Sequence record: MH791411.1
Strand: one strand, 5' to 3'
DNA length: 64,000 nucleotides
In this document: piece after piece, positions 62,412-63,093 of the stretch
Position numbering within the stretch: position 1 is the stretch's first letter
Layout: each line of letters begins with the position of its first letter
Made by a program: the position numbers and the translations under genes
Notes under the pieces: model-generated
Databases searched by the model: none
What the model was told of the DNA's origin: nothing
Seen by the model: only the letters and a program-made list of their open reading frames with translations

Positions 62412-62659
62412 TAATTCCAGCGACCTTCTTTAAGACCTTCAACGAAACCAGTACAGCCACCTGGAACGTAAACATCGTTTACGAAAATTTGTGGAACCTG
62501 TCGTACTGGCTCACCACATAGTTCAGATAGTTTAGCACCATCAATACCAGCGGTAACAATATCGATAAACTCCATATCAAATTTGTTATTTTCACATACT
62601 GCTTTAGCAGTGTCGCAGAATTTACAACCAGTAGTGCGACCATAAATTTTAACTTTCAT
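62411..62659 (-). CDS. Glutaredoxin
   Basis: CKFC active site, RQVPQIF and GG motifs. Confidence 0.9.
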   Translation of the reverse strand: MKVKIYGRTTGCKFCDTAKAVCENNKFDMEFIDIVTAGIDGAKLSELCGEPVRQVPQIFVNDVYVPGGCTGFVEGLKEGRWN

Positions 62660-63093
62660 TTCTTTTCCCTTTATTTCGTTGAAACATTGTAACAGCCTTT
62701 ATTATACTGTTACACATTCGTTCAGTCAAATACTTTTGACAATCTAGTACATCAATGTACATGAACTTATCCAATTCTGGGTGACTTCTACCATATCTGT
62801 TTGTGTAAGTACTTTTACACTCCAACTCTTCTGGTATAGGCTTATCTTTGGCTGTATAGAAAAATAAAACTAAACGTTTCCCCTTTCTATACGATACATC
62901 ACCAAGAAACAGAAGATCATCTTCATCGATTTCATATCCTGTCTCTTCGTAGCATTCACGTACAGCAGCCTCTTTAAATGTTTCTGTACCTTCAGTTTTA
63001 CCTTTAGGTAAGTCCCAGTGATTCTGTCCGTGTTGTATGCCCGATAAGTATCTGACCATCACGATAAAATATTATACCACAGCTATAACGCAT
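62649..63093 (-). CDS. Nudix hydrolase (T4 NudE-like); requires a +1 shift, best placed at CGG 63028-63030
   Basis: Nudix box KGKTEGTETFKEAAVRECYEETG. The missing N-terminal strand MRYSCGIIFYRDGQILIGHTT lies in the upstream frame (ATG 63093, stop 63004). Confidence 0.85.

Follow-up and report, generated by a model that had tools for sequence, protein, structure and literature searches.

A candidate conserved +1 ribosomal frameshift in the NudE-type Nudix hydrolase gene of Asteriusvirus jumbo phages

The window analysed here, a stretch of 64,000 nucleotides from sequence record MH791411.1, comes from an Asteriusvirus jumbo phage and is at the locus described below 100% identical to Escherichia phage Ecwhy_1. 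On its minus strand, with the genes for a CCA-adding enzyme and a glutaredoxin as neighbours, lies a Nudix gene that falls into two parts in different reading frames. The features of the locus are the following.

63136..63163, minus strand: predicted sigma-70-like promoter, GGGACA, 16 nt, TG-extended TATAAT (consensus scan, 10/12 matches)
63101..63104, minus strand: weak Shine-Dalgarno-like GAGA, 8-11 nt 5′ of ATG 63093 (direct reading)
63031..63093, minus strand: Nudix part 1, MRYSCGIIFYRDGQILIGHTT, encoded by 21 codons of frame A and holding the initial strands of the fold
63057..63062, minus strand: GTG 63062 / ATG 63059, the rival internal start chosen by ORF callers and GenBank annotators
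63024..63039, minus strand: proposed +1 shift site CAT ACA ACA CGG A CAG (alignment to intact orthologs)
62649..63029, minus strand: Nudix part 2, frame B (+1), 126 codons and stop, beginning with GQNHWDLPKG
63004..63006, minus strand: TAA closing the unshifted 29-aa frame-A product
62934..63002, minus strand: Nudix box GKTEGTETFKEAAVRECYEETGY (GX5EX7REUXEEXGU), with every catalytic Glu/Arg position present

Frame A opens at ATG 63093-63091, is translated as MRYSCGIIFYRDGQILIGHTT followed by RTESLGLT, and closes at TAA 63006-63004, and frame B is open from GTG 63062 / ATG 63059 to 62649. The first-pass annotation of this DNA had placed the split at ACA CGG A, and the sequence indeed reads as it described, on the minus strand throughout. 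The codons CAT (63039-37), ACA (63036-34), ACA (63033-31) and CGG (63030-28) are followed by A 63027, and the zero-frame CGG (63030-63028) overlaps the +1 codon GGA (63029-63027), with which GQNHWDLPKG starts. Skipping one base at the junction joins both pieces into a product of 147 aa. Either C 63030 or, with the same result, A 63031 can be regarded as the extra base, since direct reading confirms the earlier remark that deletion of the neighbouring A likewise restores the frame; for a +1 shift that skips the C, the expected junction peptide is DGQILIGHTTGQNHWDLPK. The upstream frame from ATG 63093 also stands, as had been claimed, right behind a promoter, the sigma-70-like match of 10/12 at 63163-63136. 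This predicted promoter is kept across the Asteriusvirus clades, and a GAGA/AGGA motif is found at an equal distance from the start in the intact orthologs.

Intact orthologs of the gene are present as single ORFs in Eneladusvirus, Alcyoneusvirus, XaC1 and metagenomic lineages. In a search of 5.8 billion proteins the 37 clusters of no more than 80% identity were without exception intact, and the four clusters at 89% identity or more were all truncated forms beginning with MVRYL. A single ORF with GHTTGQxHWDLPKG is seen in all the intact clusters and at each non-Asteriusvirus locus that was read; the +1-frame Gly is found in 36 of the 37 clusters, and the amino acids of part 1 are identical or near-identical to the N-termini of all these clusters. 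The product translated across the two frames aligns with its closest intact relative free of gaps and with 120 of 145 residues identical. An ortholog alignment had been proposed as a check on the split, and the single-ORF orthologs proved to be colinear through the junction, with exactly one base fewer there. Within the genus, the shift site does not vary among nine Asteriusvirus sequences from three clades, apart from a CAA in place of the CAG codon in Turkey5, and CATACAACACGGACA is carried by all nine of these distinct sequences, which were read directly. Judged from the alignments, a one-base offset from the orthologs that is repeated in every examined Asteriusvirus sequence is far beyond chance, and it appears rather likely that the insertion became fixed in the ancestor shared by the whole genus Asteriusvirus.

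The gene probably encodes a Nudix hydrolase of the T4 NudE type, interrupted by the one-base insertion, as suggested by profile matches and motifs. The annotated frame-B ORF of 137 aa matches the Pfam NUDIX family (PF00293) with 45.8 bits (cut-off 21.1) from profile position 25 only, and the intact orthologs match from position 6-8, with the NUDIX domain beginning at their residue 6. The match to phrog_1185, nudix hydrolase, has an E value of 6e-45 for the 128-aa frame-B stretch 62649-63035 and of 7e-51 for an intact ortholog. Genes of T4-like phages that are annotated as nudE are 35-43% identical by tblastn, and the nearest solved folds are those of RppH and the Ap4A hydrolases. The two U positions of the Nudix box are occupied by C and Y and not by I, L or V. 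The AlphaFold model of an intact ortholog has the N-terminal strands E4-6, E9-11 and E14-20, which are encoded in frame A, with the remainder of the fold in frame B; this agrees with the earlier statement that the first strand belongs to the Nudix fold, and a single polypeptide with a complete Nudix fold from the window gene requires a +1 shift. The motif S.GI.F...L.GH.T...HWD.PKG is contiguous in the NudE of KpCCP1 and in all intact relatives, and in the window it is found only across the frame join. The +1 join thus restores, as the first-pass annotation had it, both this pattern of the T4-type NudE proteins and the GHTTGQxHWDLPKG of the relatives. T4 NudE.1 (gene e.1) is of the same family and shares the N-terminal motif and the Nudix-box motif with the Asteriusvirus protein, although the T4-type genes are annotated as single ORFs, one of which (KpCCP1) was read directly, whereas the Asteriusvirus gene is split. 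Homologues of the enzyme decap NAD-RNA and hydrolyse Ap4A, and for T4 NudE.1 the decapping of NAD-RNA has been demonstrated in vitro (bioRxiv 10.1101/2024.04.04.588121).

A one-base break of the frame is the commonest signature both of a pseudogene that decays after a frameshift mutation and of a sequencing or assembly error, and two records are flagged UNVERIFIED; even so, a dead gene or an artefact is extremely improbable at this locus. The same base recurs in independent public runs and in the 35 records, which many laboratories produced on a variety of platforms, and the site is not a homopolymer. A 151-nt stretch is matched by all 35 Asteriusvirus GenBank records, and 14 DNA runs contain 94% or more of the words sampled from the stretch. 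Positions 63020-63045, for which resequencing had been advised, are covered by contigs of four runs (three RNA-labelled libraries, one DNA run) from three studies. These contigs neither gain nor lose a letter there, and the single-base error that the first-pass annotation had named as a refutation is not seen. Sequencing error was excluded by the 35 records, the 14 DNA runs and the four independent public runs without an indel, and the observed split is not a read or assembly error but a genus-wide insertion. The three RNA-labelled contigs, which are consensus contigs, possibly DNA-derived, in which a minority species would be hidden, match the DNA and to that extent speak against a correction at the RNA level, in which the mRNA would lose one base through transcriptional slippage or editing. 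Such a correction would also give the full-length product, with nothing specific otherwise in its favour; transcriptional slippage is known elsewhere at homopolymer runs, but the site (ACAACACGGACA) holds no such run, and we consider this explanation very improbable.

In frame B the C piece has a dN/dS of 0.05-0.09, with a dN of 0.05-0.07 and a dS of 0.7-1.1 between clades, and a comparable selection signal is absent from its two other frames. The N piece has six variable sites among the nine Asteriusvirus sequences, five of which are frame-A third positions, and the sixth gives a change of I to V in frame A that also occurs in intact relatives; read in frame B, the substitutions in this piece would be S to L, G to V, G to D and V to G. 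The frame-A tail 3′ of the site varies (RTESLGLT, RTAALGFT, RTTALGFT, RTETLGFT). By these comparisons each half is under purifying selection in its own frame. A pseudogene was ruled out by dN/dS, as strong purifying selection is seen on both sides of the site across clades at a dS of 0.7-1.1, and the gene has kept an intact Nudix box. An excess of synonymous constraint in the N piece was considered as a sign of a shift signal and rejected: the N/C dS ratios are equally low (0.15-0.23) between intact relatives, and since low synonymous divergence of the N piece also occurs between some of these, it is not evidence of such a signal.

The GenBank CDS of the Nudix gene begins at the internal ATG in every annotation inspected (8 records, three clades), and ribosomal slippage is marked in 0 of the 8. 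Translation from ATG 63059 or GTG 63062 would produce a split or truncated enzyme of 136 or 137 aa with the original first strands missing, and the 29-aa peptide would complement it in trans or represent an upstream leader ORF. While this internal start was picked by all annotators and the sequence 5′ of it is AU-rich, no Shine-Dalgarno-like purine run is found 5′ of 63059/63062, and the GTG/ATG codons are part of a 14-bp stretch that is predicted to pair with the 5′ leader. All Asteriusvirus sequences have frame B open from the GTG/ATG onwards, and the string CGT GAT GG, which holds both codons, is invariant in the genus and variable in the intact relatives; the frame-B residues ahead of GQNHW that are unique to the truncated product, however, vary non-conservatively between clades (SG, SD, LV), which fits the first-pass view that the annotated start yields a non-homologous N-terminus. 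A peptide working in trans would explain the conservation of the frame-A N piece equally well, but the truncated product is without three strand elements of the fold, as judged from the AlphaFold ortholog model, and we know of no split Nudix of this kind. A structure model of the truncated ORF, with a mean pLDDT of 62 and values below 50 for residues 1-25, would also speak against such an enzyme, but it was set aside as evidence too weak to weigh, having been computed from a single sequence with no alignment. Taken together, the split or truncated enzyme appears unlikely.

The best reading of the locus, to which we assign a probability of roughly 0.6, is a conserved corrective +1 ribosomal frameshift that makes a 147-aa Nudix protein, and the true product of the gene is probably of this length. 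What we infer from the sequence is that a shift occurs, where exactly it lies and how efficient it is. For the corrective frameshift, translation would start at ATG 63093, with the promoter, the ribosome-binding motif and the start codon as in the intact orthologs, and frame A would be read through His-Thr-Thr (CAT ACA ACA), after which the ribosome would pause with an empty A site at the rare zero-frame CGG. A fraction of the ribosomes could then accept Gly-tRNA on the overlapping +1 codon GGA, passing over C 63030, and would go on in frame B to yield the 147-aa ...GHTT-GQNHWDLPKG..., colinear with the orthologs. Ribosomes decoding CGG would stop eight codons on and leave the 29-aa peptide.

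The codon usage of the phage is consistent with such a pause. The window's rarest sense codon is CGG, used once among 19,612 codons read in frame, whereas its two other frames hold 49 and 153 CGG triplets, and it is extremely avoided in this phage. Among the Gly codons of the window GGA ranks second, with 192 uses. CGG is read by a minor host tRNA-Arg, and its rarity suggests that it is slow to decode, although the presence of a rare codon at the site is partly expected by chance, because XGG is a rare Arg codon for two of the four possible inserted bases. Re-pairing in the +1 frame of the prfB/Ty1 type is not found at the site, since the shifts from ACA to CAC and from CGG to GGA leave at most one pair. 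As the peptidyl-tRNA-Thr on ACA cannot re-pair with CAC, the efficiency of the shift is probably low, and the mechanism would be of the Ty3 or glass-sponge-mitochondrion type, that is, out-of-frame A-site binding or unpaired slippage, and not of the prfB/Ty1 type. To our knowledge, the known +1 sites of bacterial ribosomes depend on a slippery codon in the P site and in most cases on a stop codon (prfB; CCC_UGA in some phages), and recoding by a +1 base skip at a rare sense codon is hardly documented in bacteria. Nor do we know of re-pairing-independent frameshifting being established for natural E. coli or phage genes, for which reason the efficiency may even be very low.

Additional signals were sought around the site. 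No significant downstream stimulatory RNA structure was detected (z-scores 0.08 to -1.0), and no prfB-like Shine-Dalgarno stimulator at a suitable spacing is found at the site; the nearest upstream G-rich triplet, 6 nt from the site, is GGG, GGA or GGT and differs between clades. Translational bypass from this upstream Gly codon to GGA was rejected, as the take-off codon varies in this way and the intervening HTT is conserved. Slippage of tRNA-Thr from ACA to the ACG two bases on, which would re-pair, was likewise dismissed on direct reading because it leads into the wrong frame. A scan of the window for a rare CGG or AGG codon with a short zero frame and a long +1 frame returned only this site and a candidate at 15595(+), which was discarded as being antisense to a 762-aa gene.

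The tRNAs of the phages bear on a further explanation, in which C-GGA would be decoded in a quadruplet-like manner by a special tRNA and not through a pause-driven shift. The candidate is the tRNA-Gly(UCC) of the 121Q clade, with the anticodon loop C-U-U-C-C-G-A, in which U34-C35-C36-G37 is exactly complementary to CGGA. On the ribosome, four Watson-Crick codon-anticodon pairs involving an unmethylated G37 were observed in the +1 frame (PMC12340085), and attention has been drawn to a tRNA-Gly of sponge mitochondria that matches UGGA (PMC5009743). This tRNA gene is, however, limited to 23 records, all of the 121Q clade, with nothing in the syntenic gap of fEgEco12; as it is clade-restricted and missing from the clade of the window, it cannot be the general mechanism. 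The 64-kb window itself is without tRNA genes. In fEgEco12, which is of the same clade as the window, the scanned cluster holds tRNAs for Ser (two), Met, Asn and Thr (two), and the genome paper lists the same six tRNAs genome-wide. No enlarged anticodon loop of at least 8 nt is present in the fEgEco12 and 121Q tRNA clusters, all loops read letter by letter being of 7 nt, and the other phage tRNAs in the scanned clusters are ordinary by ARAGORN and Rfam. Quadruplet-like decoding as the explanation is thus improbable. A broader conception, which we regard as distinctly speculative and rather unlikely to hold in full, is that the Asteriusvirus site is a natural, long-conserved case of +1 recoding without P-site re-pairing, in which CGG would gauge tRNA-Arg(CCG) and so set the amount of the Nudix protein, with the 121Q tRNA-Gly boosting the shift through four-base pairing.

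The closest parallel to the proposed pause-driven shift is seen in the mitochondria of glass sponges (Hexactinellida), where at the sites UGG_A and CGG_A one base is inserted 5′ of GGA and a conserved Gly lies in the +1 frame (PMC2267718, PMC5009743). As in Asteriusvirus, the insertion makes an extremely rare zero-frame XGG next to a conserved +1 GGA Gly codon, both flanks are selected, the P-site tRNA has no obvious re-pairing, and the sites are read as pause-driven and Ty3-like; the inserted C is the same as in the rarer glass-sponge variant. In contrast, the sponge sites belong to mitochondria with reduced tRNA sets and dedicated translation and number several per genome, whereas the site described here is confined to one gene per genome and would use E. 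coli ribosomes during infection. The yeast elements Ty3 (GCG_AGU_U) and Ty1 (CUU_AGG_C) share the slow, rare A-site sense codon that is proposed here. In Ty1 the tRNA that reads the +1 codon competes to an extent that matters (tRNA-Gly for GGC), as it may in Asteriusvirus, and in Ty3 the P-site tRNA likewise cannot re-pair in the +1 frame. Both, however, operate on eukaryotic ribosomes; Ty3 is stimulated by a defined 14-nt element on its 3′ side and has an unusual I:G wobble pair in its P site, and neither a stimulator nor weak P-site pairing was found at the present site; moreover, Ty frameshifting sets a Gag:Gag-Pol ratio, whereas the unshifted Asteriusvirus product is a 29-aa stub. The prfB gene (RF2, CUU_UGA_C) similarly has a conserved early +1 shift that is needed for the full-length protein and a poorly decoded A-site codon, but it uses a stop codon, re-pairing of CUU as UUU, a Shine-Dalgarno-like stimulator at 3-nt spacing and autoregulation, none of which was found here. 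Finally, at the corrective sites of animal mitochondria (nad3 of birds and turtles, cob of Polyrhachis ants; PMC5009743) an inactivating insertion likewise persists in the long term and the unshifted product is useless, although these are in another type of genome, with AGY after a Gly codon in the ants, and in essential genes, unlike which the phage Nudix gene is probably accessory. No mention of the Asteriusvirus frameshift was found in a full-text search for Asteriusvirus and frameshift or in term look-ups in the Sharanji and fEgEco12 genome papers.

The truncated forms of the Nudix protein carried by GenBank and by all near-identical database clusters are where the proposed 147-aa product would have consequences for annotation. 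If no shift takes place, the Asteriusvirus phages would have a Nudix enzyme that acts without its first strands, or in trans with them, which would be unusual in itself. If the corrective frameshift is real, it would represent re-pairing-independent, pause-driven +1 shifting on E. coli ribosomes, at a site conserved over a dS of about 1 without a slippery codon or a stop, and it would make a debated mechanism accessible in the most tractable genetic system. Should the more speculative conception also be true, the site would be the first counterpart in a bacterial system of the Ty3 and sponge-mitochondrial shifting and would provide a natural case of tRNA-assisted quadruplet reading. For the phages themselves, the site may hold the NudE-type enzyme at a low or condition-dependent level.

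The Nudix gene lies on the minus strand and is divided between two reading frames that meet at CAT ACA ACA C GGA CAG, where the zero-frame codon CGG (63030-63028) overlaps the +1 codon GGA (63029-63027).

Features of the split Nudix gene
63163-63136, minus strand: predicted promoter-like site with an extended -10 element
8-11 nt upstream of ATG 63093, minus strand: GAGA motif
ATG 63093 to stop 63006-63004, minus strand: frame-A ORF of 29 codons, reading MRYSCGIIFYRDGQILIGHTT, then RTESLGLT
GTG 63062 / ATG 63059 to 62649, minus strand: frame-B ORF, +1 relative to frame A
From GGA 63029, minus strand: GQNHWDLPKG, then an intact Nudix box, in frame B

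The first-pass annotation had described such a split gene with a joined product of 147 aa, and this description is accurate. The Pfam NUDIX match of the annotated 137-aa ORF starts only at profile position 25, whereas that of intact orthologs starts at position 6-8. Nudix-fold strands lie at residues 4-6, 9-11 and 14-20 of the closest intact relative as modelled by AlphaFold (mean pLDDT 79.6), and sequence alignments with solved structures of Ap4A hydrolase and RppH start at residue 4-5; the nearest folds found by Foldseek are RppH, Ap4A hydrolases and Dcp2. By family the protein belongs with T4 NudE.1: it matches phrog_1185 at E 6e-45 and shares 35-43% identity with genes annotated as nudE. 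T4 NudE.1 decaps NAD-RNA in vitro (bioRxiv 10.1101/2024.04.04.588121).

The 1 kb around the gene is 100% identical to Escherichia phages Ecwhy_1 and vB_Ec-M-J and ~86% identical to phages 121Q, PBECO4 and slurp01, all jumbo myoviruses of the genus Asteriusvirus, in which the Ecwhy_1-like phages, including fEgEco12, and the 121Q clade are separate. Orthologs of 140-147 aa occur as single ORFs in Erwinia phage pEa_SNUABM_49 (Eneladusvirus), Klebsiella phage phiKp_21 (Alcyoneusvirus), Xanthomonas phage XaC1, ten IMG/VR contigs and several metagenome contigs, and begin M-R-Y/H-S/T-C-G-I-I-F-Y...G-H-T-T-G-Q-x-H-W-D-L-P-K-G. In DNA alignments Asteriusvirus has a single additional base after the second Thr codon and before the Gly codon, the Erwinia phage reading CAT ACA ACA GGT CAG and the two closest intact relatives CAC ACT ACT GGT/GGA; the alignment fits either C 63030 or A 63031 as the inserted base. 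The joined product aligns with the closest intact relative without a gap at the junction (120 of 145 residues identical). Among 5.8 billion proteins searched, all four clusters of at least 89% identity were truncated calls of 132-136 aa beginning MVRYL and all 37 clusters of at most 80% identity were intact, some of them fused to glutaredoxin; the frame break is thus a fixed feature of a single genus and is absent outside it.

A sequencing error at the junction is unlikely. The 151-nt stretch is matched by 35 of 35 Escherichia and Salmonella Asteriusvirus records, and CATACAACACGGACA is present in all nine distinct sequences read directly, which represent three clades (the window, TH47, 121Q, slurp01, a metagenome contig, JNE01, Turkey5, ph0011 and UE-S1); the remaining records equal one of these nine in identity and bit score, which fits an identical sequence. 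At least 94% of the words sampled from the stretch are present in each of 14 public DNA runs, which come from different studies. Contigs of three RNA-labelled libraries and of one wastewater DNA run span the junction without any insertion or deletion, and the site is not homopolymeric. The RNA-labelled contigs and the lack of a homopolymer also argue against correction of the extra base at the RNA level, which is likewise improbable.

Both halves of the gene are under coding selection, each in its own frame, which makes a pseudogene unlikely. Between clades, the C-terminal piece has a dN of 0.05-0.07 and a dS of 0.7-1.1 in frame B, a pattern seen in neither of its other two frames. The 63-nt N-terminal piece has six variable columns among the nine sequences, five of them at frame-A third positions; the remaining one, combined with one of those five, changes Ile to Val in frame A, and Val is also found there in several intact relatives. 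Read in frame B, the same changes would replace S by L, G by V, G by D and V by G. The frame-A tail past the junction is not conserved. These two signals put the change of coding frame, from A to B, no more than a few codons from 63030, and the split arrangement has persisted through near-saturating synonymous divergence. No extra synonymous constraint near the site is claimed, as some pairs of intact relatives also show low dS in the N-terminal piece. On these comparisons the split is real, and the joining of the frames put forward in the first-pass annotation is supported at the level of sequence and evolution; from it we infer a ribosomal shift.

A +1 ribosomal shift at the junction is plausible given its codon context. 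CGG is the rarest sense codon of the window, occurring in frame once among the 19,612 codons of 42 long ORFs, while in the other two frames of the same genes the triplet is seen 49 and 153 times. The window's GC content is 37.5%, and its arginine codons are extremely skewed (CGT 428 versus CGG 1 and AGG 5). Of the Gly codons, 75% are GGT, and the +1 codon GGA ranks second; the junction Gly is found in 36 of the 37 intact clusters. The layout is the one known from +1 sites of glass-sponge mitochondria, where an insert beside GGA makes a UGG or CGG codon that is almost unused and the Gly read in the +1 frame is conserved (PMC2267718; PMC5009743), and the frame would be restored by a +1 shift onto GGA, as read for the sponge sites. 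Re-pairing in the P site fails for both tRNA-Thr (ACA with CAC) and tRNA-Arg (CGG with GGA), and neither a prfB-like Shine-Dalgarno stimulator nor significant downstream RNA structure was found at the junction; the shift is therefore probably inefficient unless an unseen factor assists. The sole other in-frame CGG (52355-52357, minus strand) is codon 139 of 142 in a head-closure protein gene (phrog_218; ORF 52343-52771), is followed by A (AAC CGG ATT GGA ATT TAA) and shows no sign of recoding.

The window contains no tRNA genes. Its relative fEgEco12 encodes two tRNA-Ser, tRNA-Met, tRNA-Asn, plus two tandem tRNA-Thr(UGU), all with normal loops, and 121Q encodes tRNA-Gly(UCC), two tRNA-Ser, and Leu, Met, Asn and Thr(UGU) tRNAs. 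The 121Q tRNA-Gly (L025:2683-2755, a 121Q locus equal to NC_025447.1 72682-72754) has the loop C-U-U-C-C-G-A with G at position 37, so that U34-C35-C36-G37 is exactly complementary to the junction CGGA; four Watson-Crick codon-anticodon pairs with unmethylated G37 have been observed on the ribosome (PMC12340085). Such a tRNA-Gly is limited to the 121Q clade (23 records) and missing from the syntenic spot in fEgEco12, which rules it out as an explanation for the window's phage; the predicted four-base pairing is a lead for the 121Q clade only. The two tRNA-Thr genes of fEgEco12 (L018:6988-7141, in PP777464.1) differ from each other and read the ACA codons before the shift site; phages of the window's clade have two against one in the 121Q clade, and in some of their genomes an HNH endonuclease gene splits the pair. 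One 121Q tRNA-Ser (L025:5465-5556) is called with an unusual anticodon, ACT, by ARAGORN as well as in the record; its fEgEco12 counterpart has GCT.

A serious, if rather improbable, alternative is internal initiation at 63059/63062, from which a truncated enzyme would result; the 29-aa peptide might then work in trans. Frame B is open from these codons, and the GTG ATG letters are unchanged throughout the genus; however, they are preceded by no ribosome-binding motif, and residues specific to the truncated product are unconstrained. The two codons also fall within a predicted minus-strand pairing of 14 base pairs with one mismatch between the start of the predicted mRNA leader (63116-63130, GUAUCUGAACAUCAC) and gene codons 11-15 (63048-63062, GUGAUGGUCAGAUAC), which would cover them while leaving the ribosome-binding site and ATG 63093 inside the loop. 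The 8-bp core of this predicted pairing, GUAUCUGA/UCAGAUAC, is shared with Eneladusvirus and the closest intact relatives.

The gene is flanked upstream by a CCA-adding tRNA nucleotidyltransferase gene and downstream by glutaredoxin, with a macro-domain protein beyond. The CCA-adding enzyme gene (63169-64000, minus strand) continues past the window end, encodes 370 aa in 121Q and is annotated in different records as a phosphatase, a tRNA nucleotidyltransferase or a multifunctional CCA protein. The Nudix and glutaredoxin genes overlap in the window's clade, since the Nudix ORF ends (62649) 11 nt past the glutaredoxin ATG (62659); in the 121Q clade they adjoin without overlapping, Nudix being shorter by four codons. 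Several metagenomic relatives carry in-frame Nudix-glutaredoxin fusions of 225-227 aa with Pfam NUDIX and Glutaredoxin matches (for example contig locus L022:281-961 and proteins P0007, P0010, P0015, P0016, P0018 and P0023), which suggests that the two neighbouring proteins act together.

The Nudix gene was taken as a truncated ORF in all eight records inspected, none with a slippage annotation, and in four near-identical protein clusters, and no mention of a Nudix frameshift was found in a full-text literature search or by term look-ups in the Sharanji and fEgEco12 genome papers. Corrective +1 frameshifting is already known as a type of event. The proposed Asteriusvirus shift site is open to direct testing and, if true, a conserved rare XGG over GGA read by E. 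coli ribosomes without a slippery or stop codon would be a new variant.
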